DNA of 64,000 nucleotides from Takakia lepidozioides (lineage: Eukaryota; Plantae; Bryophyta), in NCBI GenBank assembly GCA_030704615.1, contig CM060731.1, positions 15,314,001 through 15,378,000 on the forward strand, read 5' to 3'. A program made the translations under genes and the position numbers. Each line of letters starts with the position of its first letter. Position 1 is the stretch's first letter. This document shows positions 2,934 through 38,048 of this stretch, piece after piece. The notes beneath the pieces are model-generated. The model searched no databases and was not told where the DNA came from. It worked only from the letters and a program-made list of their open reading frames with translations.

Positions 2934-5261
2934 ATGGCAGAGGGCCAGGACGATGACCGTCAAGGAAGATATGACCCCAATGAACATGGACCGCCCCCTA
3001 AGAAAATCAAATGGCAAGGCAAGACTTGAATTGGGGAGTATATGATGACCCTAGTATACTAGCAGAAGAGGGTTGGGATGATGTTTCGGAAGAGTTCAGG
3101 TGGCATGTAAAAAATTCGTGAAATGGTACCACATCAATCGATCGTGGCCTTTGGATAGGCATGACGTGCAAACCCGAAACAATTACGCAGAGTCCAGGTC
3201 TTGCACGAACTTGCATTTCCAGCATAGGACGAATGAGGTGCATTGCACATTGTGGGGTCAACCTCTCTTAAAGGGCCAAATCCCGTACACTTTGGCAGTC
3301 ATGTTGTACGTGGAGATCATACTCTTGCGTCCAGTGAATTGGCAAACTGCTAGTAGGAGGAACGCAAGGTTACTATACGATTTGGAGTACATCCCAGACA
3401 CGTTCGGAATACAACCGGCCACAACATTAGAGGAACAATTGGCGGAAAGAGACCAGCGAATCAGGACCCTGCAGGACCGACTAGACTGGCAAATACTCCG
3501 CATAGCCGAGTTGGAAGCTAGATTGCAAGACATGCCTCCAAACAATGAAGGCATTGTTGTCCACAATGAGGATCGAACAAACGTCGTGGATATGCACGCG
3601 GAGTTTGCGATGCCCGATCGCAGTATTGACCTCATCATTCACGAAATTACGGACGTCATTGACCCTGTGGCCGATGAAACCATGGTTGAGGAACAGCGAA
3701 TTGTGGATGAGAGAAGGAGGAAAGAAAAAAAAACCAGTACTGGAAACCGGGGAATGCTCGAGGGTCGTCATTCAATCCGAGATGAAACCGATATTAGATG
3801 TCGACCGCGTTACAAAAGAGCGGGACATTGCCATGACAATTGCATGGCGCTTGTCCAAAACGCTGGAGATTCGAGCATGGGTCCCATTGAATGACGATTG
3901 GGAGAATTGGGTACAATGGGCGACCCATTTGGCCTCCAGAGAAGCATGGGTAGAGTGGGCACTGTCAGGCTTGCAACGTGTCGCACGCATGTCGAACCGT
4001 AGCGTGGATAACATTTATGTCAACTGCAAAGGTATAACGATCTCCGTATCGCATCAAGCGTGTTCGCCGGGTATACCAATTGGGCAGATGTGGATTCTAT
4101 GTTCGATCGATGTGAGCACATAATTTCGGGGTCGAACAGAAACATAAACTGGGAATTGGAGATAAAGGAAGAGTGGGACACCACAACAAGGATGACCAGC
4201 CACATCAAACCGGCCCAGAGGGAGGAGATACCACGAGATGTTTTGCCGTCATGGATATCAGATGACACAGTTTGTTCAATGTGTAGGAATCCATATGGCC
4301 CAGAGGGATGTCATGTGCTTGGATCATGTGGACATATGTTCCATCTTACATGTCTTATCCCGCAAGCCTTGCGGACGAGCGCTTGCCTAGAATGTCGTAC
4401 ACCAATCCATCGCCGTTTCTATGAGCTGGTGGGCTTGGAGGATCGGATGCCCATAGGTTTTGAATACAATCGACACAACCTCCCATTGGATGGGCTACCA
4501 TACACATTTCTGAATTGTGTGCATTGGGGCAAGAACTTGGTATGGGATGCAGACAGAGAGATGCATGACATACATGTCGGAAACCCGGCATACATCAAAG
4601 ATCCCCAGTATTTATGGGTCACATCTGACTGGGAGTTAACCATACGTACGGGAGACATTCGAGATTGATGGGAGAGAGAGCAGTTTTGCCACAATCTGGG
4701 AGGGCATTGGAGTCAATGAATGTCCAGGTTTATCCGGCTCCCACAGGTTCCATGGGTGCCGGAGGAGAACGAATTGTATGACCGACAACCGATTGGGAGA
4801 CATTTGTTGCTGTCCGAACTGGAAGATGTTATAATATGTCAACGCCGAATGAATGATGCGTACGAGGCGGCTTATTGTCAAAACGACACAATGATTAGGC
4901 ACAGGACCCGCAAAAGGCAGTTGAAAAGTTTCAAACGTACCATCAAGGCAGTTGTAGAGAAATGGAGGCGACTATGGACAGACCGTTATCATCGTGTTTC
5001 GGGGGCTCTATTGCCGGATGTGGACGGCCTTGTTGCCGATTTGCATGCAGCCCGAGCACTTGCTCTCGATCCACCTCCGCACGTCGTGAGAGTGAAGAAG
5101 AAAGTCAACTTTCACCGCGAAGTAGGCGGATGCAGGCCAGAATTGATCACATGTCATTAGGCCCCTCATTGACCATGAGATCACGGTCGCAAGCTCTGGC
5201 AATTAGCAGTGCAAATCAGGCCACAACATCAAATTCTTTGTCCTCGGACAGTGACGACTAG
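2934..5261 (+). pseudogene. Element-borne RING-H2 zinc-finger protein (putative E3 ligase), frameshifted
   Basis: CSMC-x14-CGHMFHLTC-x10-CLEC (C3H2C3) at ~4273-4395. Coiled coil LEEQLAERDQRIRTLQDRL at ~3430-3530. Coding signal continues over ORFs 3100-3894, 3545-4123, 4060-4668, 4720-5160 and 4962-5261 via frameshifts and stops. Candidate ATG at 2934 after a TTGCAG acceptor-like site. Confidence 0.75.
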
Positions 5262-5709
5262 GCTTTTAATGACTGGCAGTGTAGTACATATACAGTATGC
5301 ATTTTTGTTGTACCTTGAATATTGTTGGAAAACACAGTGATGGCATTCCGCCAATTTTGTATATCACCAATTTTGTTAATACACAATGCACATGTGCGGC
5401 ACCTGCCAATTTCAATTGCATGAGCAGCGTTTTTTTCACATTTACACTCGTGTGATGGGGAAGAAGTAGTTCACCCTGTAAACAAATTTACAATGGTGTC
5501 ATATTTGGTCATGACGTGTATATGGGTATTTGCAATGAACTCCGAAAGCTGGAGAACAAAGAAAATTGATGTTAAGCAATAAGTTATAACGAGTTACGAA
5601 CGGTCATCTTCCAAACAAATTTCGCCTGGTCCCTGCGTATTTCATAATCATTTCGCAAAATCTATGATCTTTCTACGAACATACCCACAAAGTTCTCAAA
5701 GCACAAAAT

Positions 5710-7130
5710 AATTTCGATTGATCTTATGTTACACTGGGACGTATCAAATGGTACATTGCACACACTGGCCAGGTTTCAAAGCAAACGAAAATCATTTCGA
5801 TGGGCAACCATCCGTTGGCCTATTGAACGAATTTCAATTGATCTCATAATACTCTGGGGCCTCTTACATGGCACATTGAACATAGTGGCCAAGTCTCAAA
5901 GCGAACCAAAATCATTTCGATGGCCAACCATCCGCTGAGCCATCGAATGAATTTCGATTGATCTCATATTAGTCCGGGACCTGTGAGATGGTGTCTTAAA
6001 TGTACTGGCAAAGTTTGGAAACAAACAAAAATGATTTGGATGAGCAACCCATTGAATGTATTCCGTTGGATCTACTATTGCTTTGGGACCTGTTGGCCTA
6101 TGTTTCGCGTGCTCATGATTTTTTTTTTCATTCTGTTTTTGAATGGGGTGTGTAGTGTAGCCATATGCAACGTGCGTGCCAAATTTGGGAGCGATCAAAA
6201 ATTCATTTGGACCCAAAACCACAGTTTCTTCCCTGTTTTGCACTCCAAACTTGATTTGTGTTCTATTTCATGCGCTCTTCATAGAGAGTTCTGCAATAGT
6301 GAGTGAAGAGAACATTTTTTTTTGGGGGCATTTTTTGTTGGTCCAAATTTTGGCGGGGAAGTAGCGGTGGGATGCTGGAAGCCGCAGAACAAAATTGAAC
6401 CAAAAACAAAATCGATACGTGTCAGAAATCCCCAATGAAAGGCAGTGCAAACCTATTTATTGGCTTAAAATAAATTTAAGTTCAATTAAATTGTCGAATG
6501 GCTTGAGGGGGGAGCGCATCGATGGGGAGGCAAATGATTTATTTGTCTGTTGTGTCTCTGCACATGTGTCGCACACATGTTCAAGCACATGCGGGCAAAA
6601 GAGGGGCTTCAACCACATCCGTTCAATGGGTGCAATAGCCGTGCACGCATTGTAGGATTTTTTTTTCGCATTGAACAAAAACCAGATGACAAGTGAACGC
6701 CTCATTGGACAATTGAATGAATTTTGATTGATCTCGTATTACTCTGGGACGTATCAGAGGATACATTGAACACACTGGCCAAGTCTCAAAGCGAACGAAA
6801 ATCATTTGGATGGGCAACCATCCGTTGGCCCATTGAACGAATTTCGATTGATCTCATATTACTTTGGGGCCTCTTACGTGGCACATTGAACGTGGCCAAC
6901 TCTCAAAGCGAACCAAAATCATTTTGATGGCCAACCATCCGTTGAACAATTGAATGAATTTCGATTGATCTCATAGTAGTCATGGACCCGATACATGGTA
7001 TGTTGAACATAGTGGCAAGATTGAAAGCAAACGAAAATCATTTGGATGGGCAACCATTCAATCGCCCATTGAATGAATGGGGTTTCGTGACTCGTCTTCG
7101 ATTATACTGGGACCTGTTACATGGTATGCC
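5710..7130. repeat. ~120-bp tandem repeats in two blocks of three (5710-6070 and 6720-7130)
   Basis: Unit AATTTCGATTGATCTCATATTAC..GGGAC..GGCACATTGAAC..TGGCCAAGTCTCAAAGCGAAC.AAAATCATTT.GATGG.CAACCATCCGTTGGCCCATTGAACG recurs at ~5710, 5830, 5950, 6720, 6840 and 6957. Confidence 0.85.
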
Positions 7131-7132
7131 CT

Positions 7133-8925
7133 TTGAAGCTCTTTTTGTAGTGTCTCGTGCCTCGTAATGCGGTGCTTCTCCATGTCCACTTTATCCAATA
7201 TGTTGATATTCTCCACCTAGAACAGATCCACACATGTGTGCAGAAATCCTTAAAAAGCAAATGACCATCTCCACTTTTGTAAGCCTCATCCCCAGCTTCC
7301 AGTTTTGATGGTCATTTGGTTTTTTAAGTCTTTATATACGTGGATATGTGGATATGTTCCAAATGGAAGATATTAATATTGGAAAAATAAGAGTTGGAGA
7401 AGCACCTCATTACGAAGCAAGAGACATTACAGAAGACCTCAACATGTTGAACATCTGGATGAAGAACCTTGCCCATCGTCGCTTCAAAGTTCTAGCGCTT
7501 CTGAAATGATCACATGTTTGTTGGTGGAAGCAGATCTCGTAGGCCACATTGATCTCGTACCCATCGAAGACTCCCGTAGGCCACATGGAACGATTCATGT
7601 GATACATTTTCACAAATGCGATGTGATACATTTGTGAAATGGTATCACATCAACTGTTTAATGTGGCCAATACACCTCTTCCGCACCATGGCGGAAATCT
7701 TCGCCACTTGAAATGGTCCCGATACCAGTATTGCGGTGAGTTCATGGCGATTGGAGGTAGGTATGAGTATATGTTAGTGCAGCTAGTTATACCCTGTACT
7801 ATAATTTGGTTAATTCAAGGCTCCACGTTGCAATTTAGACTTCATTTGTTGTTTCGTGCTACTTTAGGTTACCTTTGCCTAGTGTTTCACGGCTTGGATT
7901 AAAATTAGCTATGTGCTAAATGACATTTATTTCTATGTATGGTGAGATGTAGAAATAATCCGTGCAAACAATCTCAAGAATCATATGTACTGCAAGGTGT
8001 TTCATACTGCCGATGTTCATGTAGCTGAATTCTTTAGGAATCGTTTTGCTACTCCCATGCCAACAACATCAGGTCCACTGTGACTGTCATATTCCGAATT
8101 CCGTATCAGCCACCACGGACATGAAACCAGGAACTTCGCACGGGCCATGGCTGCAGCCTGCAAGCTGGCCGGGGTGGCTGATACGTCCGTTTGAACATGA
8201 CAGTTTCAGAGGACGTTGGCATGGGAATAGCAAAAAGAGTACTACAGAATTCAGCTAGAGGAACAACAATAGCATGAAACACCTTACCGTAAATATGATT
8301 GTTAACATTGGTTGTGACAACTCTAATCAATAGAGAACTCGCACCATCAGTTGCGCTCCAGCAGCAGTACCGGTCCCCCGAGTAAATAAAATTCTGTTGT
8401 AAATAATAAATTGCATACGCTCGAACCTCACAAATGTCATTTCACCAAACCGGCCATGTATTATGGCACTGTTTGTAACTTCGAATGTTTCAATGTTTCT
8501 GACAGGGTACTGAAAAAATGATATATTGGCTCCATATGAGTTAGACAACAACTATTTCATATCTCATTCAACTGTGCGACACTATCATGAGTGACATGGA
8601 TCAAAAAGTAATAGGTGTACATGCGACCTCCGCACGTTCAAGTAGACCATTTGCTGGACCTAGTATCAAACGTTCGGATGTCGCATGTGTACCTATTACT
8701 TTTCGATCCATGTCTCTCATGGTAGTGTCGCACAGTTGAATGAGATGTGAGACGTTTATTGTCTAACTCCTACGGAACTAATACATCGTTTTCTCATAAC
8801 CCTATCCAAAACCTTGGAACATTACAAATATAAACAGTGAGCCAGTACACAAACCATTTATGTTGCAATGACATGTGTCAGGGTCGAGCATATGCAATGT
8901 AGTATTTACAATGGGACTTTATTTA
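7133..8925. ncRNA. Cluster of long imperfect fold-back hairpins (candidate polycistronic pre-miRNA/hpRNA locus)
   Basis: Inverted repeats at 7133-7442 (~135-bp arms), 7579-7668, 7771-7925 (weak), 7979-8300 (~140-bp arms) and 8383-8925 (~255-bp arms, ~30-nt loop), plus a possible weak stem at 7670-7763. The arms are unrelated to each other. The structure is directly visible; RNA expression is not shown. Confidence 0.55.
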
Positions 8926-9001
8926 TTACATGCACGATCAAAATTGAGTTATATCTTCATAAAAGAACCCTTGTACCGCCACAAATCTCATATCTACGAG
9001 A

Positions 9002-10469
9002 CTATGGTCTACTCCGTCCTATATACGTCGTTGGCTCAGGCCAATTGAATGGCTTGCCCATGAACCAAAATACTACATGGGCTAATGTGACTCTCTCATT
9101 CTTGTTGTTGTCGTACAACCTTTGTAACATTGAATGCCAACAACCTCCCGTAAATTGGTCCTCGAACATACTTTGATCATAATAAGCGCCGCCATTTATT
9201 TGTACCGCTATCTTCCCAACAGCAAAGGCCTCCGACGTCATGTCCTGGGAGGGGGGCATGGCATTCGCATTGAAAACCGATGCAATATCTTTTTCCACCC
9301 ACCATCTTTTCGCGAGTTCCTGGTCCAGCTTGTCCTGATTTTCAAACTGGTACGGCGAGGCTTTGCGTATGCCCAATGGGGTGGCTAAGCCCCAATCACA
9401 CACCCCAATCTTGATCTCCTCGGTGCCATCTGGAAAATGCAACAAGATGTTGTCGGGGGACAAGTCGTTGTGTATGACACCATTTTTGTGGACATCATCC
9501 ACGATGCACACCAGTGCCCATGCAAGTTTACTGCGCACTTTCCGGAAATGAAGCAAACGAGCGCATTCCTGGAACTCTGCTTCCGTTCCCATTTGTTCCA
9601 AAATCACTCTGTTGTCCGAATCGTTGCTTCATTTTCTGTCAAGGTTCTTCATGTCGCGTATTGTCCCCCCCATTCCACCATCGAGTGTAACCCTCTACCT
9701 CACGTGCATTCACAGCAAAATATGAGATAACACCCGGATGCTGGAACTTCACTGCCAAACACTCGTCGATATGTTGTCTCAACGCCTTTTCTGGATTTTT
9801 GGACTTGGGTTTTTTTCCCGCTAGCTCCCAACGCTCCAGTATTCTAGAATCGTCAACAATCCTACACTGACGGTCCTTAGCATACCCTCCTTCTTTGTAA
9901 AGACCAATCTCTACCACCTTCGCAGTAGAGTTCAGGTAATAAAGACCAGTTGTGCCTCCCCCGCCCGATAACCCCGCCTTCCAAGGGACAATCCTAGTCC
10001 GACGATGTGAATTCTGACTTGTCGAGCAAGCCCAATACTCAACACGCCGCATTAACTCAGCTTCGGCGGAAGGCACTCGACCATTGGTTGCTCTACCCTT
10101 CCATGTCTTCATTAGCTGCCTCAAATTCCACGTGGCGTTTTTCGCCTTGCTTTGGATCCACCGATTGAACTTTGGCTTGTCCCTGTCCGCCGTCCACTTA
10201 GCCCCCGCCAAAGCGTTTATCATTTTCCTCTCCATATTTTGCTGGAAAATCTGAAACCCCTCCCATCCATGCCTGATATAAGCACTCTCCAGCCTCATCA
10301 TGTTCCTACCCTTGAAATAATCCACTACCACTTCTTTCACCCTATCCAAGGCATCCAGTCCCGGGTAGTCTGACTTGTTGACCTGGCTATCCCGCTCGTG
10401 GGCACGTTTTCTCTTCCTCCGACCCCCATATGACCTTGCCCCAACACTTGAATTCACAACCCTCGACAT
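9002..10469 (-). pseudogene. Element-borne protein kinase (eukaryotic protein kinase fold), frameshifted
   Basis: N-lobe GLYKEGGYA..LAGKK..DECL..HPGVI in ORF 9639-10469. Catalytic loop HNDLSPDNIL and DWGLA (DFG equivalent) in ORF 9002-9607. The two join via a 1-bp loss in the G-run at ~9665 and one stop. N-terminal RKRKR NLS-like patch. Confidence 0.8.
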
Positions 10470-11059: not shown

Positions 11060-11620
11060 CTGCCACATGGCGGTCGCTATATTTATAAAAACAAGAAGAG
11101 CGACCGCCAAATGGCGGTCACCGCTTTTTTTTTAAAAAAAATATTAAATAAGCGACCGCCTACTGGCGGTCGCTTAATTTGGCGATTCAAAATATAAATA
11201 AGCGACCGCCGCTAAATGGCGGTCGCTTCATTTTGAGAAATATATTACGTAAGTGACCGCCAAACGGCGGTCGCTTAATTTAAGAATGAAAATCAAATCG
11301 AGCGACCGCCTCCAAATGGCGGTCGCTGCATTTTTCAAAAATTAACTGAAGAAGCGACCGCCAAACGGCGTTCGCTTTATTCAAGAATAAAAATAAAAAT
11401 AAGCGACCGCTGCTAAATGGCCGTCGCTAAATTGAAAATATATATATAGCAGAATATATCAAAGATATTATAATAATAATATAATAAAGTGCGAGCGACC
11501 GCCAATCTGGGCGGTCGTTTCATTTAAAACATCATAAACTTCAACCGACCGCCAATATAGGCGGTTGCTTTTATTTTTAAAATAATAAATTATATGCGAC
11601 CGCCAATATAGGCAGACACA
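11060..11620. repeat. Subterminal GCGACCGCC palindrome array
   Basis: About a dozen palindromes separated by A/T tracts between the kinase promoter and the right TIR. Confidence 0.9.
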
Positions 11621-12519
11621 TTTCTTTAAAAAAATTAAGAAATATTAATAATTGGCCACGCCTGTATTACACCGTGGCTGCCATGTCATTACAAAGGGTA
11701 GAAGTAAATCGTAAAAATCAAATGTAAAAAAAAATTACATGGGTAACCATCCGGATTCGACGTGACGTGACGCATGTCATACGTGACGGCCGACGTGTCA
11801 GCGCCACATCACGTCAGGAATGATAACTAGGATTAGAGCAACGTGACAATTTCTACCTGATACGTTGCGAGACCATTGTCAACCGTGTCATTTAAAGCAC
11901 AGCCCATAGGGCGTTTTCTTCTTAAGGCCAAGCACTCCTTGCTTGGCTTCACTTTGAATAGCGATCGGATGTTGAGGTGAGGAACAGGCAGACCGTTGTC
12001 TGCAGTCATTTAATCGGCCCCTAGATGTTCGAACGGACGACTGGAATCGCACGTCTTCGACTGCTGCTCCTTGTAGGTGCCCTAGTCGTATAAACTCCTG
12101 AGCGGTTTGGCTTCATGGACGGCGCAGACTCTTCCATTTGCGGGCCATACCAGTAGCTGTGCCGATGTTTTGTCATTTCTGCTTGGCAGTGGATTTTCCT
12201 CTAAGACCACAATACATACTTGTATTTCTGTAGAATGTGTGGAGGATTATATAATTCGTTGTTATATGGTTCACAAATAACCAAATAATTATAGATATAT
12301 CTCTTTATTTCTATTATATATTATATTTATTCATATATCTTATATTATTTCTGGACCAAACAAAAATCCAGAATTGGTTAAAATAGTTTTTGTCCCAAAC
12401 CACGGGGCCCCAGCCTTGGTGCTTGGTACCATTGGAAAACCCTCGGTGAGGAGGGGTGCACGGGCTCGGTCTCATGATTTTTAGACCTGCGGTGTGGAAG
12501 ATGTCAAATTTCAAGTATT

Positions 12520-12606: not shown

Positions 12607-14108
12607 TACCAATCTGGTCTTCCCTAGGCATAAAAGGTTGTGCAGGTGGGGTTTGAACCTCAAGCCTTGGAGCTGGCGCAACATGAGTAGTGGCCATGGC
12701 AGCAAGACGTTGCTCTAGCTGGGCAAGTCTATCCACCATGCCTTGGTCATGACCTTGACCCTGACCCTGTGCTCCTTGGTTTTGGTTACGTCCTCCACCC
12801 CGACCTCTGCCTCCTCTACCTCTCTGGACTACATTGCCTCGTCTTCGGCCACCATTGTTCCGTTGGAACTGGCCTGGCTGTAGCTCAGGATGCAAGTCAT
12901 AACAATGGGTCTCTTCATGCCCACATTGTAGTCGTGTAGGTTGTTCCTGTGCCGGCCCTTTGCGTCTCTCCGGGCAATCTCTCTTAACATGGGGTCCTTC
13001 ACAATCCCAACATGTCACACCCGACTGTTGTTGGCCTGAGAATGAAGGAAAAGACCTCTGCATCTGAGATCCTCTCTGTCCTTCCCTCGGCTTCACCTGA
13101 GCCCCCTTGTTGCCTTGAACACGTTGGGGTAGTGGTTGTTGTTGGCTAGGAGCCCCACTTCGTTTGTGTCTCCTTGCCAAACCCCATCATAACCACTCGC
13201 TCCTCCACCATATTGAGCTCTATCCGCTCTGCTAGCAAAAACACATTTGCTAGGATGGGTTGGTCCACTTGTAGGAGAATTGCATCTCGCACCCTTCTCC
13301 TCAGCTCCTTGTCCAATATCTCATACCAAAGTTGGACTGCCTGAGCTTCCGTAACCCCTTGGGTTACATTTATCAAGCGCCTCATGCGGGTGTAAGCCTC
13401 CCTCAAACTCTCAGTAGACCTTCGTTGGAACTCTTGCAAGCTCCGCAACTTCTCTGTTCTTATCCCTTGGTAGTTTCTCTTCAACTCCTCGAAGAACTCC
13501 ACAACTGGGTTAAAGGCAGGCACGGGTGTTGGTGCTGCAGCAGGAGCTTGAGTGGATTTCCCAGCTCCTGTACCACTTGTCCCACTACTAGTGCTTGCAG
13601 TTGGAGATGTTTGTGTAGCTGCTAGTGTCGCCGCTGCCCTTGTGCTTCTAGTGATGGAGACATAGTTAGGTGACCAATACTCTCGCCACTCCTCAATCTC
13701 CACCGCATGTCCCCATCTAAATTCATGGTAATCATCCATGGGCGGCCCCTCAAGGTGCTGAAACAACCCCTTCCACGCCATAAAAGGCGTAAACAGTTGT
13801 GGATTGCGCATCTGCTGCAAATCACACCAACTATCAAACTCTTGTATGAAATCATCAAGCTCGATGGTGCCCACAGCTCCAGAGTACCGACGTGGCCCCT
13901 TGGTAGCTCCATACATTTCCTCCATCGTATCCCACAACAATGGCACGGAAATGACTTGCACCCTCGGCGAGAATCCTCCTAACTCTGAGTCTGAACCTTC
14001 CTCAGAAGACACTGAAGGTGAAGGTGGCCTAAACCGCACACCTCGTCTTGTATACCCACTAGTATTGCTGGTGCTCGTACCGGCACTCTCCTCAACAACT
14101 GGTGGCAC
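12607..14108 (-). pseudogene. gag: LTR-retrotransposon gag with zinc knuckle (frameshifted, 3'-truncated)
   Basis: Gag core FFEELKRNYQG..LQEFQRRSTESLREAYTRMRRL in ORF 13146-14108. CWDCEGPHVKRDC knuckle and RGG-rich tail in ORF 12587-13180. Confidence 0.8.
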
Positions 14109-14190
14109 CCTCGTGATGAAAACTCACAACCACACATGTTGTAAACTTGTCTGTAATCCCCCTTTCCACAAGGTAACCGGGTAGAGAACC

Positions 14191-15149
14191 TGTTGCAGCT
14201 TATGGCTTAGACTACTAGGTTCGTAACATAAACCTATACCTGCATTTACCGCAAGCACTCATATGGTCTGCTGGTCATCAACCCAGTCTCACCATAAGAT
14301 AAACAATGATGGTCTGATTGGTCATCACCCCAGCCTCACCACCGATAGCATGCTCTAGGATTGGCCGGTGATCAAATCCGGACCAACCTCCTATGAAAAC
14401 AAGCGCCCACACAAAACTGACATGACGCACAGTCAAGCATGCAAGTGTGGGGGGGCTCCAAACACAAGAAAATCAAGACAGTAACTCCCCCACACAAAAA
14501 AAAACACTCCACAGTGTCGCTCCTGCAAGGACACCCCAACCCAAACCCGGACTGACTCTTGCCTCCACCTACGGAAAGGTTTTGGCCTACATAGAGGGTG
14601 GAAGACTACGGGGAAGAGAGACTAAAGAAATTCCTAATCCCAGATTGCTCTCATCCCACTAGTCTCCCCCTATCTCTAAACGCTCTTGTTCATGACCAAC
14701 AAACAGAACTACCTTCCAAGGTCTCTCAAATAATCTCACTAAGGCTCTCGCCAAATATTGGTCTTCAAAGACCCCCAATAGTCCTCCAAACAGTCATCCA
14801 AACACCCCTTCAAGAGCTCTTCAAGTGTCTTACAAAAGCTCCTCAAAGGAACCCCCAAAGATCCTCCAAAGGCAATACTCCTCCAGATACACCCTAGATG
14901 GCATACACTTTTAATGAAAACGTATGGTAGGCAAAGTCTCTCCACTTGTATCCATACCTTGTTCACAAAATTGTATGGTGGGGCAGAGGGAGCCCATACA
15001 CTATATACGTTGGGCAGAGGGGGCCCATACACTGTTCACAAAAGTGTATGATGGGCAGAGGGAGCCCATACACAGTTTCTTGAAGAGTATGGAGACTAGG
15101 GTTTGTAGAGTATAGTAAGAAACACCTTCTTCATGATATCTTCCCCCCT
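14191..15149 (-). mobile_element. Probable LTR (~950 bp) preceded by a polypurine tract
   Basis: Minus strand AGGGGGGAAGA (15139-15149), then TATCATG (degenerate TGTCATG)...GCAACA at 14191. Internal GGGCAGAGGGAGCCCATACAC repeats. Boundaries approximate. Confidence 0.4.
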
Positions 15150-16525
15150 AACATGCATGCAAGATTGCATTATCTCTACTTTGCAATGCATTCATCCCAA
15201 ATTGACAAGTTTCTCTTGATCTCCTTGGAACTCATAGCAAGCTAATGTGCCCAATGACAAGCACCAAGCCTTGCTTGAAATTTGAATTTGGTATGCCATC
15301 TTCCATGTGCTTTCCCTTGCATGGGCTAGTCACACACACTTCCACCTCTTGACCTAGGTGTTGTCTTCATTCATCATAATGTGTATCCACACCTCTATTC
15401 AAGAGCTCATCTTCTAAAACTTGAAGTCACAAGCCCTAAAGAGCATGCTCCACATAAGCATCATCCACCACAAAACTTAAGCAAAAAGGGAATGAATACA
15501 TTAGCTTCACCTTCCCTTCCTTGTCTTGTCACATGCTAATGTATGGTTGAAGTTGCTATGCATGCCGTGAGCCACAATCTCCTTTCTTCATGAAGACCAC
15601 CTCCAATGAACTCCCACATGTGCTCCAAGCTCTTCAATACTCTAGGCTTGGTTTCACATCATCATGGATAGAATTCTCACCCACAAGCTTCCTTTTGGAG
15701 TCATCTTGAGCTTCTTGATGCTCTCCAAGTGGTTGCTTTTGTTGTCTTCAAGCCCTAGCCTATGTAGCTCCTTGGCTTTTCTTCCACAACATGCACCACC
15801 TCATGCACAAGGAATGAACTTGCTCACTTCACCTTCTAGCTCTCCTCAAGCTTGAATTGGAAGCCACACTTGGAAAGCATGCTCCACACATGCGCCACTT
15901 GCTTGGTCAATCACTTGCTTCACCAAGAGCAATCCTTGAACTCATAGAACTAGCAAAAACACTCTCTTCTAGCGCCGCCTTCGCTTGCTTGTTTATCAAC
16001 CAAATGAAACCCCACTTGGCTTCATTTCACCATGGATAGAACAACCACTTCTTAGCTTCTCTTGAGCTACTCAATGCTCCTCAAGCTACCCTTGTTGTAC
16101 TCCTTCTATGGTGTTTCCAATCCAAACATGTGCCGCTCTTTGGCTTCTCTTTCACACCATGAACAAGTACTAGAGCTTGTTCTTGAAACCTTGTGTTTAT
16201 CTTCTCCACACACAAGACGCTTCTCTTGTGATGCAAGAGCTCTTTTCCAAGCTCTCAAACCCTTAGTGCACACACACTTACCTTGCAAAACCATGCAAGC
16301 TTTGTGATACAATAGCTCTCTCCTTAAGCTCTCCACCTCTGCAAAGTCTTGTAACTCAAGAGCTCTATCCTTGAGCTCTCCACCTCTTTTATGCAATGCA
16401 GAAACACTCCTCCTTGTAGCACCTTGCAAGCCTTGTGAGATACTTGAGCTTTCCTAGCTCTCTCACTCCTTGGTGTACACCAACACAAGTGCTAAAACTA
16501 ATCCTTACACTCCGCACTCACAAGC
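15150..16525 (-). mobile_element. Degenerate LTR-element internal region with a coiled-coil ORF remnant
   Basis: Strand-skewed sequence upstream of the PPT. ORF 16106-16429 contains ELKDRALELQDFAEVESLRRELL. 16480-16525 resembles 18745-18790. Confidence 0.4.
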
Positions 16526-16529
16526 ATAA

Positions 16530-18351
16530 GGTGCGGTCTTGGATTGGATCGGCAGTGCTATTGGATGTAGCAGCGGTGGGATCACGAGCTCATCGACCTC
16601 GATTGTGGTGGACCAATCTTGCACCACCAAAGCTGCTCAAGAGAGCATACGATTCCATTCAATGGCCACCCAATCTCACAGTTGAGGGCATTTTGGACCA
16701 AGGGAGGCAACCATAGAGGGTGCGACATGATGACCGTCCACCTCTAGCAGTGGTAAATCGAGTGGGGCAGCCACGTGCGGCCTTGCCTAAGCTCATGAGC
16801 TTTCCCTCGTCTCATGCTTTTCGAGACAATGGTCCTGGGTTGATTTGGGACAGTGTGCTACAGCAATTGGTGGAGCCCAATGCAGATGAGCGAGAGCGGG
16901 CAATGGGATTTGCCACGGGCACTACAGCTGTGCCAGCTCTGTTAGAGGCATCACGCCGACATGTGTTGGGTCAAGCAATGGATCTAAATTGCTTGACATG
17001 GGTCATTGGCTTGTGCATGGTTGAGCAACGGAGGTTGCAGACAGTGGTGGCTACTTCTGCATTCCCATTTGGTATTGTATCCTCTCTGCCAACCGGGACG
17101 GTTGAGGCAGTGAGTGGGGGCGAGCACAATATCATGGGGTGCAAACACCCATGGCAGATGTGGGATGAGATGCGGAAAGAGAGAGTCTTTGGATCTCTCA
17201 AGCAGCAATATGAGGAGTGGGGAGAGCCATACACTGAGGATCAGTTGGAGGCCAAGGTGGCCAATGTTTTTGAAGAGGTTGAAAATGTTTCTTCCCCAGA
17301 GGATGTTCTCAAGGTGGTTATGGCAGAGCAAGTGGAGGCTACGCCACAGTCAGATTGGGCGGACAAGGCCCAAGAGGTTGTTATCTAGCAACCAAAGGAT
17401 TCGTCTCCTACCTCCAAGCCTAATGTATCCAAGGTTGCAATCACTGAGGACAATTGGGAACCAGATGTTGGACCTACAGTCACCGGAGGAGAGAGACGGA
17501 GCATCCAGCGATTTTTAAGGGCTTATAGAAATTGCTTTGCCTTCTGTTTGGAGGATTTGGGGAGTTTGAAGGGTCAGGAGATTCGTATTGATTTGGCAAG
17601 TGACACGCCAATCTTTCGAAGGCCCTACCGGTATAGTGACATGGAGAGGTCATTGATCCAGTCACGGACTATGGAGTTGTTCGAAGCTGGATTGGTGGAG
17701 TTGTCAGGCGGGGAGTATGCCTCGGCAACGGTGATGCCAGCTAAGAAGGATATCTATGGCAATTGGACAGAAAGAAGGATGTGTGGGGACTATCGTCATG
17801 TGAACCGTCAGACTAAGTCCGATAGATATGCCATGCCAACTCCAGAGGAAATCTTAGATGCCATTGGGCATGCGAAGGTGTTTAGTACATTGGACTTGCG
17901 ATCCGGTTACCACCAGTTGCCAATCAAAGAGGCTGACAAGCAAAAGACGGCATTCTGGGGGATTGACCAACATGAGAAGGATTGCTTGTACCAATGGCGC
18001 TTCCTACCGTTTGGGTTGAAGAATGCTCCTGCAGAGTTTCAGAGGGTTATGGATAGGATTCTCGCGGGGCTAGACTTTGCCCGGTGTTACTTTGATGACA
18101 TCATCGTCTTTAGTGCTACGGTTGAGGAGCATGAGAGACACCTTCAGGTGGTGTTTGAGCGCTTGAGAGCGCATGGGTTGAAATTGCACCCTGGGAAATG
18201 CAAGTTCTTCCACAACCAGATTGAGTATCTGGGCCACATGATATACCCTGGAGGATTGGGTGTTCAAAAGACGAAGGTGGAGGCCATTGCATGCATTCCA
18301 CGCCCCATAGATGTTAGCAGAGTTCGTGCTTTCATGGGGTTGACAAACTAC
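16530..18351 (+). mobile_element. pol: Ty3/Gypsy-type pol fragment: C-terminal half of a C5 DNA methyltransferase in frame with reverse transcriptase
   Basis: MTase motif VIII (DVAAVGSRAHRPRLWWTNL), IX (ERERAMGFATGTT) and X (RRHVLGQAMD). RT motifs RMCGDYR, LDLRSGYHQ, PFGLKNAP, YFDD and IEYLGH. ORFs 16435, 16720 and 17548 share one frame broken only by TAG at 16714 and 17386. Truncated after FMGLTNY. Confidence 0.9.
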
Positions 18352-18789
18352 CCTGCACTTGCCACTTCCATAGACATGCTCCTTCCAAGCTTGAGATTGA
18401 AACCCCAACTCAAAGCATGCTCTACAAATGCACTATCTTGCGCCAAAGAGAAATCAGATCTCTACCTTCACTCCTAGCTCTCCTAAGCTTGAAGTTGAAG
18501 ATCCCCACAAGCTGAAACCATGCTCCACACATGCACCGCTTGCTTGATTAACACCCGAGCTCTTCTAGAACTCCTAAAACCCTGCAACAACTTGCAGAAC
18601 AAGAACTATCGTCTCTAGCTCTCAAACTTTGCACTAGGGCCCTCCTTGAAAACCTCCACCTATGCATAAACACCACAAAGGACTTTCTTTGCAAACCCTA
18701 CAACACTTGTAACACAGAAGCTCTCTACCAAGCTCTCTTTAACACACAAGTGTTACCTATCCTAACACCTTGCACTCATAGATGTAAGC

Positions 18790-22475: not shown

Positions 22476-25400
22476 CCCGGTTATCAGCGTCACGTTCATC
22501 AGTCAGCGTCAGGTCACGTCAGACCTGATGCTGACGAGACCTCCGTCACGTCAGGTTCCGGGAATATTAGTAAAAAACGTACCAGGTAAAATATTGCCAC
22601 TGAAGCAGCCACGTCGCCGACACGGTGGCGGTGACAAATACATTTTGGAAAATAATAAAATGAAAGCGACCGCCAATTCTGGCGGTCGCTTTACATTTCG
22701 GAAATTTAGAAATAAGAGCGACTGCCAATTCTGGCGGTCGCTTCATATTTCGGAATTTAAGAAATAAAAGCGACCGCCAACATGACGTTCGCTTAAAAAA
22801 AATTTATAAAAAAAAAAAAAATTGGCGGGCGGTCGTCTAATGAAAAAAAAAAAACCAGCAACCTCCGTATTGGTGGTCCCATAATTTTGAAAATATATAA
22901 AAAACAAGCGACCGCCAGAATTGGCAGTCACTTGTTTTGAATAATACATAAAAAGCAAGCGACCGCCATAATATGGCGGTCGCTTTATCTTATAAATACA
23001 TTAAAAAAACCAGTGACCACCATTATATGACGATCGCTTTATTTTAAAAATATCTTAGAAAAAACCAGTGACTGCATAATATGGCGGTCGCTATATTTTA
23101 AATATATTAAAAAAACCAGCGACCGCCATAGTATGGCGGTCGCTTTAATTTAAAAAAAATACAAAACAGCGACTCCCATAATATGGCGGTCGCTTTATTT
23201 TTGAAATAATATATTATAAAAAAAATATTATTAATTTCAGAAAACGTAGCGACTGCCAGTAATGTCGGTCGCATATAAGAAAAAAAAAAAAAAAAAACGA
23301 CTGCCATTATTGGCAGTCGCCTATGTTTTTTTATTTTATTTTATTTTTATTTTTTTAAAGAAATGCGAGGCCCTGAAAATTTAAAATAGAGTGACCGCCA
23401 TTACTGGCGGTCGCTTGTATATTTTTAATTTCTGAAAATACAACGACCGCCAGTAATGACGATCGCTTTTATTTTTTATTTATTTAAATAGAGCGACCGC
23501 CATTATTGCTGGTCATTTCTTAAAAAGCAAAATAGAGGGGAGGCTCAAAGGAGGTTCATTCTCCCCTCACTTCCTCTCCACACAACTTATGTGCGACCGC
23601 CATTATTGACGGTCGATTTTGTTTATTTATTTATTTTTAAATAGAGTGACGGCCATTCTCTTGTATATTTTTAATTTTTGAAAATGCTGCGACCGTTATG
23701 ACAGTCGTTTTTTTTTTAAATTAAAAAAAAAATAGAGCGACCGCCATTACTGGTGGTAGCTTGCATATTTTTAATTTCTGAAAATGTTGCGACTGCCAGT
23801 AATGACGGTCGCTTTTATTTTTTTTTGTTTTTTTAATAGAACGACTATCGTTACTGGCGGTCGCTGCTTTGTTGTTTTTTTAAAAATGTAGCGACCGTCA
23901 TGGTGGCGGTCGCTTCTAGAAAGTGTGCCTTACGCGTGGACCGAGGAATGAGAGAGGGGGAGCAGATAAGCCAATGAAAGGTTATTCTCCCCTCACTTCC
24001 TTTCCACACAACTTATGTGCGACCGCCATTATTGGCGGCCATTTTTATTTTTTTATTTTTTTAAACAGAGCGACCGTCATTACTGGGGGTCGCTTGTATA
24101 TTTTTATTTTATGAAAATGTTACGACAGCTAGTAATGGCGGTCGCTTTTATTTTTTTTGAGTTTTTTAATAGAGCAACTGTCGTTACTGGTGGTCGCTTT
24201 TATTGTTTAATGTTTCAAATAGAGCGACCGCCGGTAATGGCGGTCGCCTTTTTGTTATATTTTTAAAATGTAGCGACCGCCATGGTGGCGGTCGCTTCTA
24301 GAAGGTGTGCCTTACGCGTGGACCGATGAATGAGGGGGGCGCCAGATAAGCCAATGGAGGCTCATTCTCCCCTCACTTCCTCTCCATACAACTTATGTGC
24401 GACCGCCATTATTGGCGGTCGCTTTTGGTTTTTATTTATTTATAAATAGAGCGACGGCCATTACTGGCGGTCACTTATATATTTTTAATTTCTGAAAATG
24501 CTGTGACCGCCAGTTATGGCGGTCGTTTTTATTTATTTTTTCTTAAATAGAGCGACCGCCATTACTGGTGGTCGCTTGTATATTTTTAATTTCTGAAAAT
24601 GTTGCGACTGCCAGTGATGGCGGTCGCTTTTATTTTTTTGTTTTTTTTAAATAGAGCGACTGTCGTTACTGGCGGTAGAATTTATTGTTTAATTTTTTAA
24701 ATAGTGCGACCGCCATTACCGGCGGTCGCTTTATTGTTTTTTTTTAAAATGTAGCGACCGCCATGGTGGCGGTCGCTTCTAGAAGTTGTGCCTTAGTAGT
24801 GGACCGATGAATGAGGAAGGGGGGAAGGGGGGGTGGGGGGGGGCAGATAAGCCAAGGGAGGCTCACTCTCCCCTCACTTCCTCTCCACACAACTTATGTG
24901 CGACCGCCATTATTGGCGGTCGCTTTTGTTTTTTATTTATTTTTAAATATAGCGACGGCCATTACTGGCGGTCGCTTGTATATTTTTTAATTTCTGAAAA
25001 ATAGTGCGACCGCCAGTTATGTCGGTCGCTTTTATTGTTTAATTTTTTAAATAGAGCGACCGCCATTACTAGCGGTTGTTTTTTTGTTGTTTATTTTAAA
25101 TGTAACGACTGCCATAGGATGGTCGCTTCACTTTCTAGAAAAACTTAACATAGCGACCGACGTAGTGGCGGTTGCTTCATTTAAGAGAAAAACAAATTAA
25201 AAAATTTGAAAAAAAATGTAAACGAGCGACCGCCGAATTGGCGGTTGCTTTAGTTTCTTAAAAAGTGAAGAAGAGTATGGCGGTCGCTTTATTTTTAAAA
25301 TAAATAAATGAAAATGAGCTACCACTGTAGTTGCGGTCGCTTCATTTAAAAAATAAAATAAAATAACAACTGCCATATTGGCGGTCGCTTCATTATTTTA

Positions 25401-26103
25401 AATAAACAAAAAAGAGTGCCGTATTGGCGGTTGCTTCATATACTTTAAAAAAAAAAAACGACTGCCGTAGTTGCAGTCGTTTCATTTAAATTTCTTAAAA
25501 AAAAGAGCCATTGCCGCTAAATGTTGGCTGCTAAATTTTAAAAAATAAAAATAAAAATATGCAATGGCCGGCGAATGGCGGTCGCTGTGTTTTTTTAAAT
25601 ATTTTTTAAACTGTGAGCGACTGCCAATCTGGGCGGTCGCTTAATTTTTAAAACTAATAATTTTGAAGGACTGCCAATATAGGCCGTCGCTTAATTTAAA
25701 ATATAATAAATTGCAAACGACCGCCAATATGGGCGGTCGCTCCATTTAAAACTTCATAAATTGTCGGCAACTGCCAATATAGGTGGTCGTTTAATTTAAT
25801 AAAATATTAAATTAGAAGCGACCGCCAATATGGGTGGTCGCTTTGATTTAAAAAATAATAACTTTTAAGCGTCCGTATTTTTGGGCGTCCGTATTTTTTT
25901 AAATAAATTAATAAATTTTAATAATTGGCCATGTCTGTTATACACCGCGGTTGCCATGTCATTACAAAGGGTAGAAGTAAATAGTAAAAGTCAAATATAA
26001 AAAAAATTACTTGGATAAACGTCGGGATTCGACGTGACGTGACGCACATCCGACGTGACGTCTGACGTGTCCGGGCCACGTTACGTTAGGAATGATAACT
26101 AGG
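22476..26103. mobile_element. Non-autonomous 3.6-kb TIR element with 8-bp TSD
   Basis: TIR CCCGGTTATCA / TGATAACTAGG. TSD AATAACAC (22468-22475) / AATGACAC (26104-26111). TGACGT-rich subtermini; interior is almost all GCGACCGCC palindromes plus four copies of the promoter-like module. Excision restores the MTase frame. Confidence 0.9.
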
Positions 26104-34308: not shown

Positions 34309-37300
34309 TCAATTGCATACAGCGCTCATCAATTCATCAGTATTCCCACAAGAACAAACTGCATCTTGGAAATGGTGAAAATGGTTTGCATCCCGTAAAA
34401 CAATTGCTCGCCCGACAATCTTTGAAATAAACTTCGTGGCTGTGTGGCAATCACCACACACCTCAAGGTCCTTAATGACATGGAGAGGTGTCCCAGGGGC
34501 CGTGCTAATCAGCCCAAAAGCAATGGCCAGCTTCTCACTGTGGGGGCAAAGAAAGAATTCCTTTAGCTCCTCGTCCCACTCATGCAATACAAAGCGCATG
34601 TCAGGCACATACCCTGCCTTCTTCATTTGCCCTGACAATCTTCTCAGCTCAGCATGGATTTCCTCAATCTGTGGATGCAAGTTGTCATCTACTACAAATT
34701 TGTGCACCCTGTCACCAACCTTAATGTAGGAACGACCTGAATCCTTTCTAACACCTCTGACTTTCATCATATTCATTACCTTCGCAGTATCATTCCACCG
34801 GCCAGCCGCGGCATAGATATTTGAAAGCAATACATAAGTTGAAGCATCCTGTGGATCCCATTTGAAAATAGATTTTACAGCACGCTCTCCCACCTCTACA
34901 TTGCCATAAATTCTGCAGGCACCAAGCAAGGCTTTCCACACCGCAGCATCCGGTACGATGGACATTTTGCTAATGAAGTCTTCTGCCTCATCCAATCGCC
35001 CCGCTCGACCAAGAAGGTCCACCATGCAGCCAAAGTGCTCCACTGTAGTAGTGAGGTCATGATTCTGACTCAGGGAATCAAAGTAGTGTCTGCCTTCATC
35101 CACTAGGCCCCCATGGCTGCATGCAGCAAGAACACATGTAAAGGTGATAGTGTTTGGCTTCAAGCCTTCCTTCTGCATTCCTTCAAATAGTTGCAGGGCC
35201 TCCCTACCATAACCATGCTGAGCATATCCTGCGATCATTGCACTCCATGACACCACATCTCGTTCAGCCATAGTGTCAAACACTACCTTTGCATCCTTGA
35301 TGCTACCACATTTGGCATACATGTCCACAAGAGCGTTGGCCAGAATGGTATTTGGTACAATTCCAATTTTCGCGATATCAGCATGGACCTCTTTACCCTT
35401 GTCCAGAGCTGCCAGGCTGGCACACGCATTGCAAACACAAACGAACGTGACCAAGTCAGGTTTCACCCCTTCCTGCATCATTTGCTCATACGTCTCCAAA
35501 GCCTCCATCCCACACCCATGCTGGGCATATGTTGTGATCATCGTACTCCATGACACCACATCTCTCTCAACCATATTGTCAAACACTCCCTTTGCGTCCT
35601 CCATGCTCCCACATTTGGCATACATGTTGACCAGGGTGGTGTCCAAGATAATATTTGGTACAATACCGGATTTCACGATGTCAGCATGGACATGTTTGCC
35701 CTCTTCCAGGGCTGCTAGGCGGGCACACGCATTGCAGACACACACAAACGTGACCTGGTCAGGCTTCACCTCTTCCCCCATCATTTGCTTATAGGTCTCC
35801 AAAGCCTCCATCCCACACCCGTGCTGGCCATATCCTGCAATCATCGCATTCCATGACACCACATCTCTTTCAGCCATACTATCAAACACTCCCTTCGCAT
35901 CGTCCATGCTCCCACATTTGGCATACATGTCTACAATTGTATTGTCCAGAATGATATCTGGTATAATTCCAACTTTCATGATGTCAGCATGGACCTCTTT
36001 GGCTTTTTCCAGGGCAGCCAGGCTGGCACACGCATTGCAAATGCCAATGAATGTGACTTGGTCGGGCTTCACCCTATCCTGCATCATTTTCTCATAGGTC
36101 TTCAGAGCCTCCACCCCACACCCACGCTGGGCATATCCTGCAATCATCACATTCCATGAGACCACATCTCGTTTAGCCATATTGTCAAATAGTTCCTTTG
36201 CATCATTGATGCTCCCACACTTGGCATACATGTCCACAAGGGTATTGTTCAAGTTAATATCTGGTACAATTTCAGCTTCCTTGACGTCAGCATGGATCTC
36301 TCTGGCCTTTGCCAGAGTGGCCAGGCTTGCACATGCCTTGCAAATGCAAACAAACGTGATTTGGTTGGGTTTCACCCCTTCTCGTCTCATCTGATGATAG
36401 GTCCCCAAAGCCTCCATCCCACACCCTTGCTGGGCATATCCTGCAATCATCGCATTCCATGAGACCACATCTCGTTCAGCCATATTGTCAAACACTCCAT
36501 TTGCGTCCTTGATGCTCCTGCATTTGGCATACATGTCGACGAGGGTAGTTTCCAAGATGATATTTGGCACAATTCCAGCTTTCACAATGTCAGAATGGAT
36601 GAGTTTGCCCTTCTCCAGATCTGCCAGGCTCGCACAAGCCTTGAGTATACAAACGAATGTGACTTGGTTGGGCATAACCCCTTCCTGCCTCATTTGCTTA
36701 TAGGTGTCAAATGCCTCCCTACAATATCCCTGCTTGGCATATGCTGCTATCATGATGTTCCACGTAGTCAAGCCTCGTTCAGGCATTTTGTCAAAAACTA
36801 AGCGTGCATCCACAGCGCTCCCGCACTTGGCATGCATGTTGACGAGGGTGTTGTGTAGAAAGATGTCAGGCTGGATTCCACTTTGGATGATGTGGGCATG
36901 CACCTGCTTTCCCTCGGCTAAGTCTTTCCTCTTGATGCACTCTTGCAAGAGACAAACATAAGTTTTAGAGTCTGCCAAAATGCCTCGTTGGTTCAAAATC
37001 TGTAACACTGCTTTCAGGTTTCCTGCCGTACACAGTGCCCTCACATCCCCACATATTCCAAAAGAGGCGGTTATGGCAGGGGTGCCTAACTCACATGACT
37101 GTGCTGCTGTTGCTTCGGGTTGGCCATCAACCCATAGAGGCTTCTTGTAGCTATCAATCCATAGTTGCTCATTGGCATTCTTGTTCTTGAAATCGAGTCC
37201 TCCGGTATGGATGTTTTTGGCTCGTTTGTCCAATGGATTTGAGTTTGCATACATGTCCGCAAGGGTCTGGTCCAGAGTGATATCTGGTACAATTCGACCT

Positions 37301-38048
37301 TTCCTGATGTCAACATGGACCTGTGTGCCTTTTTCCAGGTCTGCCAGACTGGCACGTGCATTGCAAACACAGAGGAGCGTGATCTGGTCAGGCTTCACTC
37401 CTTCCTGCATCTTTTGATCATAGGGCACCAAAGCCTGAATCCCACACCCATGCTGCGAATATCCTGCCATCATTGCACACCAAGAGACCAGATCTGGTTC
37501 AGTCATATTCTCAAACACTCCCATTGCGTTGGCAATGCTCCCACAGTTGGCATACATGTTGACTAAGGTAGTGTTTAGAATGACATCTGGTACAAATTCC
37601 AGATTTCGTGATCTGAGCATGGACTTCTTTGCCCTTTTCCAGGTCTGCCAGGCTCGCACAAGCCTTGAGATCACACACAGATGTGATCTGGTTGTGTATC
37701 ACGAAGGCCTCCTTATATTGCTCATTCCCCTGCCAATGAACTTGGTCCTCCTCAACTAGTCTACATAGGCCCGAAATCCGCTTGAAACTGTTTGAAGAAA
37801 CCTTAATTCAATGCGGTTCGAAAAATGCCCAGGGGCACAGTGCAGTTTTTACAGCCCACACATATTTGAAGCAGTCAGAGCAGTACCAGTCTTGCCAGCA
37901 GCGTCGCCTCGGGGACGCTTGTGAGCGCAGCCACATGTGGAGGATGTCCCGCGTACAATACGCATTGTACGCGCTGCCATGGCTGCTCATCCTCGAAATC
38001 CTACAGCCTGCGCTGCTGCTGGCGGTTTGAAGCAGGTCCCTTCGCATG
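34309..38048 (-). CDS. PLS-class PPR protein with E/DYW deaminase domain (organellar RNA-editing factor), apparently decaying
   Basis: Intronless 1121-aa ORF 34309-37674 with repeated MYAKCGS..A..VFD.M.ERDVVSWN.MI.GY motifs, E domain, HSEKLAIAFGL and CGDCH. An upstream extension from ATG 38048 has a TGA at 37808 and a +1 frameshift at ~37595. Terminal DYW is replaced by NTDELMSAVCN. Confidence 0.9.

Follow-up and report, generated by a model that had tools for sequence, protein, structure and literature searches.

Four long hairpins in a hAT-type transposon of Takakia lepidozioides, one duplicated from the element's own RING-region exon

What are several long, mutually unrelated fold-backs doing side by side in a plant DNA transposon: are they precursors of microRNAs (miRNAs), sources of hairpin small interfering RNAs (hp-siRNAs), nested insertions or scars? 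The question is raised by a 64,000-nt stretch of Takakia lepidozioides DNA (assembly GCA_030704615.1, CM060731.1:15,314,001–15,378,000, forward strand), hereafter the window, to which all positions refer. A decayed DNA transposon copy of hAT type in this window carries such fold-backs at 7133–8925. A sequence-only reading had counted five or six of them, listing six with one marked as weak, and proposed a small-RNA cassette, a candidate for miRNAs or hp-siRNAs, possibly aimed at host silencing or defence genes or regulating the element itself. Here we show that four of the fold-backs form a real local feature, and that one of these four is an inverted copy of a piece of a coding exon of the same element. 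The account that we favour, at about an even chance of being right, is that the hairpins are inverted duplications that arose within the element and would give hairpin siRNAs against their own family if transcribed.

The minimum free energy (MFE) of each RNA fold was compared with those of dinucleotide shuffles (expressed as z), and the arms were delimited by a DNA inverted-repeat search. Four fold-backs were strongly supported, at 7133–7442 (MFE −131.6 kcal/mol, z −13.1), 7579–7668 (−43.2 kcal/mol, z −7.8), 7979–8300 (−152.5 kcal/mol, z −13.0) and 8383–8925 (−268.5 kcal/mol, z −23.4), and no shuffle matched the MFE of any of them. The other two candidates, 7670–7763 (z −1.8) and 7771–7925 (z −1.7), were equalled in stability by 14 and 11 of 200 shuffles, respectively, and are not significant; the six fold-backs are thereby reduced to four. 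Hairpin 1 (7133–7442) has arms at 7143–7269 and 7307–7434 around a 37-nt loop (arm identity 75%). Hairpin 2 (7579–7668) is only 90 nt long, with arms at 7579–7618 and 7629–7668 and a 10-nt loop, and hairpin 3, delimited by its arms at 7965–8314, pairs 7965–8121 with 8166–8314 across 44 nt (75%). Hairpin 4 (8383–8925), the largest, has arms at 8383–8638 and 8669–8925 and a 30-nt loop (78%). With arm identities of 75–83% across the four hairpins, the description of imperfect stems with short loops holds.

Arm-versus-arm comparison revealed no resemblance between different hairpins, as had been noted before. No second copy of the cluster is present elsewhere in the window, and the 52 kb from 12 to 64 kb lack any further unique local inverted repeat of such a kind and contain just palindromic transposon-end arrays. 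None of the four hairpins could be assigned to a strand: the minus strand folds slightly better in four of four cases, with 39 G:U pairs versus 27, a difference that is not significant and that leaves the transcribed strand as uncallable as the sequence-only reading had it. That reading had also taken the mismatches to be mostly transitions. The arm-to-arm differences do not bear this out, as they comprise 55 transitions versus 63 transversions, and other gap settings gave similar ratios (53:52 and 43:37).

The origin of hairpin 2 could be traced within the window. When the four hairpins were scanned as 21-mers against all other sequence of the window, a sole target emerged, at 3114–3138, and it came from hairpin 2. 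This target lies in an exon of the RING-type gene region. In local alignments to 3105–3143, the right arm matched at 28 of 33 positions and the reverse complement of the left arm at 24 of 30. The blastn-short score was 35.3 bits, and ten shuffled sets reached at most 31.5 bits. In a three-way alignment, both 40-nt arms aligned to 3106–3150 through a common GTGGCC end and had derived states in common relative to the exon, namely a 3-nt insertion and, at two sites, T in place of C. A degenerate arm pattern matched only the two arms and 3114–3140, the latter with two mismatches (exon C versus arm T), at a chance expectation of 0.00 (100 shuffles). The source segment (3097–3150, plus strand) is a piece of coding exon (..CKKFVKWYHINRSWP..) at the start of the open reading frame (ORF) 3100–3894, upstream of the RING ORF. 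This ORF aligns with positions 13577–14530 (minus strand) of a distantly related locus, L001 (BLASTP E 7e-12; CKKFVKWYHINRSWP versus CKKYVKMKHLMKLWP), indicating that the source of hairpin 2 is conserved coding sequence. Judged from these alignments, hairpin 2 is an inverted duplication of ~46 nt (3106–3150) of the element's own conserved RING-region exon and not a foreign insertion. This derivation is a new result.

In whichever direction the locus were transcribed, one arm of hairpin 2 is antisense to the RING-gene mRNA. A precedent for such an arrangement is maize Mu killer (Muk), in which part of MuDR is duplicated in inverted orientation, giving a hairpin RNA and silencing of the family. 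By a criterion of this type, that the arms be homologous to the element's own gene, hairpin 2 matches, and hairpins 1, 3 and 4 have no match in the window. The suggestion of self-regulation or host targeting gains one concrete lead on the side of self-regulation, the inverted own-exon copies in hairpin 2; on the host side no target gene was found, the arms being without Pfam or protein homologue.

Neither at the DNA level nor in translation did hairpins 1, 3 and 4 resemble any other part of the window or the loci of four distant relatives of the element's kinase-like gene (described below). Ten stop-free frames over the arms gave no credible Pfam match, and the left-arm frame of hairpin 4 had no protein homologue. 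The sole match to a 111-aa frame in hairpin 3, P0009, was judged spurious, the score of this bacterial tandem-repeat protein being a sum over its repeats. These three hairpins may come from the element's transposase end, beyond the window. Signs of insertion were also sought at the hairpin borders. No target-site duplication (TSD) was found at hairpins 2, 3 or 4, and the flanks of hairpin 4 read cccccgag and ttacatgc, in agreement with the earlier observation that the largest stem lacks one. Hairpin 1 begins where the last 117-bp unit of a tandem repeat breaks off (~7127). It has TTGAA on either side, a weak and ambiguous TSD-like signal, and in a pairwise alignment the 12 nt past it resemble, suggestively, a continuation of the tandem unit; nhmmer gave no match for a resumption of the unit after the hairpin.

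The earlier claim that the cluster is carried by a DNA transposon is supported by the right end of the host element at 11831 (...TGATAACTAGG), where the terminal inverted repeat (TIR) CCTAGTTATCA occupies 11821–11831 on the minus strand. The left part of the element, including its left end and transposase end, falls beyond the window edge. The same terminus recurs at 26093–26103 in a sister element (22476–26103), which starts with CCCGGTTATCA (22476–22486), ends with CCTAGTTATCA and is flanked by the 8-bp TSD AATAACAC/AATGACAC. The 8-bp TSD and short TIRs of a sister element sharing the right end place the host element in the hAT superfamily. An initial guess that it was a CACTA element was ruled out: CACTA termini are missing, and an 8-bp TSD and hAT-like ends are present instead. 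The sister element itself is a 3.6-kb non-autonomous relative of the hAT family and consists almost entirely of GCGACCGCC..GGCGGTCGC palindrome arrays; arrays of ~50-bp units with this palindrome also occur at 1185–2345 and 11099–11633.

The window further contains an intact PPR-DYW ORF (34309–37674, minus strand, 1121 aa) with PPR, E motif and DYW deaminase domain, of the type of organelle RNA-editing factors, which identifies the genome as that of a land plant. Retrotransposon pieces lie within 13146–18477, namely a gag-like ORF (13146–14108, minus strand) and a reverse transcriptase (17548–18477, plus strand; RVT_1, E 3e-34). The host family is a land-plant transposon of hAT type present in high copy number.

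Copies elsewhere were followed in contigs from public sequencing runs: X1 (organism A), X4 (an independent sample labelled as plant metagenome) and X6 and X7, which are only guessed to be RNA. In X1, summed contig depth was 11k–82k over 7057–9019 and 22k–46k over the kinase-like gene next to the cluster, with no hairpin far above its flanks, and the share of contigs running from the hairpins into unlike sequence was ~0; the contigs are short and the test is soft. The similar depths of hairpins and kinase gene indicate that the hairpins were inherited with the element and were not separately amplified as MITEs (miniature inverted-repeat transposable elements). Together with the missing TSDs at hairpins 2–4, this result upholds, within the limits of that soft test, the earlier argument against MITEs. 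X4 contigs cover hairpins 1–3 and part of hairpin 4 and differ from the window at 10 of 267 letters over 7162–7429, 3 of 233 over 7443–7675, 5 plus gaps over 8033–8323 and 9 of 279 over 8749–9027.

Between copies, the transition:transversion ratio is ~2.5. From this copy to the others, A>G (63) and T>C (71) outnumber G>A (36) and C>T (26), and this excess of A/T here against G/C in other copies is as expected of a silenced copy undergoing deamination. Five positions unpaired here have A in this copy and G in nearly all others. When nine letters from other copies were put into hairpins 1 and 4, the MFE of hairpin 1 changed from −131.6 to −141.5 kcal/mol and that of hairpin 4 from −268.5 to −288.2 kcal/mol. 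Since the majority letters improve both folds, part of the stem imperfection is private decay of this copy.

The cluster lies between two accessory genes of the element. On its left, a decayed RING-type gene region (3100–4668, plus strand) comprises ORFs 3100–3894 and 4060–4668, with zf-RING matches at E 1.4e-4, under the Pfam cut-off. On its right, a kinase-like gene (9002–10469, minus strand) is split into ORFs 9639–10469 and 9002–9607, which tblastx showed to be one gene (Pkinase E 7.9e-8); its stop codon at 9002–9004 is 77 nt from hairpin 4. Two overlapping AATAAA motifs are found on the minus strand at 8918–8927, in the outer stem of hairpin 4 and ~80 nt past the kinase stop. Both genes are directed towards a non-coding stretch of 3.3 kb, in which blocks of a tandem repeat precede the hairpins.

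The tandem repeat (117–120-bp units, plus strand; TRF and nhmmer) forms two blocks, 5707–6093 and 6706–7127, around a 612-bp spacer (6094–6705) and lies directly upstream of hairpin 1. Its summed contig depth in X1 is 0.6–1.9 million over most of its length, ~10–60x that of the rest of the element, and 5707–7127 is also well covered in contigs of the two possible RNA runs. It is a far more abundant repeat embedded in the hAT element, either satellite-like or from another element. Between hairpins 2 and 3, a spacer without strand assignment (7669–7964) holds the two non-significant fold-backs and a variable piece, 7714–7952 (239 bp), which some contigs of other copies skip, showing ACACAAACAC instead. 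In one 576-nt contig of X4, 7713–7957 stands between unlike flanks. The piece is a separately variable or mobile unit within the spacer.

Beyond the family itself, homologues of the kinase-like gene were found at 33–51% identity. Four kinase relatives lie on ENA metagenome contigs (L001 and L017–L019), three of them with a 2OG-Fe(II) oxygenase-like neighbour. In L001, L017 and L018, a kinase homologue (~40–50% identity) is followed by a 2OG-FeII_Oxy_6 gene, and L001 has in addition a convergent homologue of ORF 3100–3894 at 13577–14530 (minus strand). These three loci resemble related multi-gene units with other cargo and no hairpins. The hairpin cluster is absent from all four relative contigs, which points to a lineage-specific feature and not an ancient module. 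A metagenome scan with a hairpin 4 core pattern gave 15 loci, all of them chance matches without blastn similarity.

Whether the hairpins resemble miRNA precursors was assessed by size, structure and family membership. The plant MIRNA criteria of Axtell and Meyers (2018) reportedly call for a foldback of at most ~300 nt and a duplex without large bulges, and are said to require one precise miRNA/miRNA* duplex with 2-nt 3' overhangs. By foldback size, hairpin 2 (90 nt) falls within and hairpins 1 (310 nt), 3 (350 nt) and 4 (543 nt) fall over the limit; three stems of 310–543 nt are of hp-siRNA rather than MIRNA size. Hairpins 1, 3 and 4, with stems of 127, 157 and 256 bp and DNA identities of 75–78%, fit the stem criterion of hp-siRNA and inverted-repeat loci, a near-perfect intramolecular stem longer than 100 bp. 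Hairpin 2 has a clean 35-bp stem and a minimum free energy index of 1.2. A search of Rfam gave only a sub-threshold MIR7533 match, at 65.2 bits on the plus strand and 61.4 bits on the minus strand against a gathering score of 230; its equal strength on both strands marks it as a generic long-hairpin signal and not family membership.

A polycistronic miRNA cassette, processed precisely by DCL1 and directed against host silencing or defence genes, is a strong version of the sequence-only reading that we find unsupported and extremely unlikely. The pre-miRNA dimensions and clean stem of hairpin 2 would suit it, and a precedent exists in miR820, which rice CACTA elements carry and which targets OsDRM2 (PMC3459959). 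Set against this are the lack of an Rfam family at threshold, with the sole match strand-symmetric, the three stems above 300 nt, the absence of any arm homologous to a host protein, the finding that the sole target is the element's own gene, and the missing hairpins in distant relatives.

In the account that we favour, the cluster would be a fixed non-coding part of the hAT family, between its convergent RING-type and kinase-like accessory genes, and the four hairpins would be old inverted duplications that arose within the element. Fold-back or template-switch repair synthesis, as in abortive gap repair of cut-and-paste elements, is the likely cause, and the loops of only 10–44 nt fit fold-back synthesis. 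Hairpins 1, 3 and 4 would have the same origin, from sequence that lies outside the window or is unrecognisable now. Read-through from either flanking gene would then give long double-stranded RNA, which plant Dicer-like enzymes would cut into heterogeneous 21–24-nt siRNAs acting in trans on all family copies, those from hairpin 2 being antisense to the RING-gene mRNA. The cluster would thus be a trigger of the Mu killer type, built into the element and leading to self-silencing or self-limitation, without precisely processed miRNAs.

Several observations weigh against this account. Depth was zero over 7057–7811, spanning hairpins 1 and 2, in X6 and X7; in these two possible RNA runs, hairpins 3 and 4 are represented by nothing more than short diverged fragments (8070–8141, 8279–8362 and 8527–8712), mostly within contigs that continue into unlike sequence. 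The AATAAA motifs at 8918–8927, if used, could place the 3' end of the kinase mRNA ahead of the hairpins. A source within the element is demonstrated for one of the four hairpins only. The transition:transversion ratio between arms (~1), compared with ~2.5 between copies, indicates either imperfect pairing in the ancestral stems or an age of these stems far exceeding that of the family burst. In addition, a high copy number despite an own silencing trigger is paradoxical.

Part of the same evidence would suit inert repair scars, an unlikely but still serious possibility in which the hairpins have the same origin, never form stable double-stranded RNA and have no effect on element or host. The empty stretch over hairpins 1 and 2 in the possible RNA runs and the poly(A) motifs just past the kinase stop agree with it, as do the free decay of the arms in this copy (17–25% mismatch), the G:U pairs without strand bias, and the lack of the cluster in the kinase gene's distant relatives, hence of an old conserved module. 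Long inverted repeats between convergent genes would, however, be hard to exclude from read-through transcripts, fragments of hairpins 3 and 4 are present in the possible RNA contigs, and transcribed inverted repeats in plants are generally diced.

We regard it as distinctly improbable that the hairpins are nested MITE or foldback insertions, that is, separate palindromic transposons that landed in the dispensable middle of the element before the family amplified. Their sizes (90–543 bp) and whole-length inverted repeats are MITE-like, and the neighbouring piece 7714–7952 does act as a separate unit, missing in some copies and in another context elsewhere. Hairpin 1 sits at a tandem-unit break, is bordered on each side by TTGAA and is followed by 12 nt that resemble a unit continuation, a resumption that nhmmer does not support. 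Hairpins 2, 3 and 4 are without TSD, the hairpins do not exceed their flanks in abundance, X1 contigs almost never pass from a hairpin into unlike sequence, and hairpin 2 consists of the element's own exon and not of foreign DNA. A selected autoregulatory module is very doubtful. Here, hairpin 2 would function as a proto-miRNA directed at the RING-type gene of its own element, and the long stems would give siRNAs or serve as Dicer/Argonaute decoys, tuning expression so that the family amplifies without full host silencing.

If the hairpins are transcribed and diced, as in-element inverted duplications that feed siRNAs would be, every copy of an abundant hAT family bears its own RNA-silencing trigger, and one stem is directed at the unusual accessory gene of RING type that the family carries. 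A Mu-killer-like hairpin would then be built into the element, as opposed to arising as a rare rearranged derivative, which would bear on the taming or self-taming of large multi-gene DNA transposons in land plants. If they are silent, they are ordinary repair scars, relevant for annotation only and likely false positives for miRNA predictors.

Among the closest known systems, the cluster on paper works like Mu killer and like young MIRNA or inverted-repeat loci formed by inverted duplication. Hairpin 2, like Mu killer, is an inverted duplication of the transposon's own transcribed sequence, from which siRNAs against the family mRNA would be expected. Mu killer is a single rearranged derivative locus acting in trans, whereas the hairpins here are within apparently standard family copies. 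The self-derived stem here is, moreover, only ~40 bp, three of the four hairpins are without known source, and silencing is a prediction. A source related to Mu killer is bioRxiv 10.1101/2020.01.09.900282. In rice, miR820 resides in CACTA transposons and targets the host de novo methyltransferase OsDRM2 (PMC3459959). The present hairpins share with it that they are carried by a DNA transposon and multiplied along with the element; miR820 is, in contrast, a defined small RNA of 21/24 nt whose host target has been validated, whereas for the hairpins here no host target was found and the one identified target is the element's own gene.

Plant MITE-derived hairpins are reported to be fold-backs able to give both siRNAs and miRNAs (PMC3086885, PMC9641971). 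The fold-back length of a few hundred base pairs and the transposon origin are common to both, but here hairpins 2–4 lack TSDs, independent amplification is not seen, and one hairpin is made from the element's own exon. Finally, the cluster can be compared with host loci of inverted-duplication type. Young MIRNA genes are said to arise by inverted duplication of their target genes (the model of Allen et al. 2004), and Arabidopsis IR71 and IR2039 are hp-siRNA loci of the inverted-duplication kind. Long near-perfect inverted repeats are the common trait of these loci and the cluster. As at young MIRNA loci, the arms of hairpin 2 remain similar to their presumed target over more than a 21-nt site, a hallmark of recent inverted duplication. 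Young MIRNA genes, IR71 and IR2039 belong to the host and have host genes as both their source and their target, whereas here hairpin and presumed target lie together in one mobile element.

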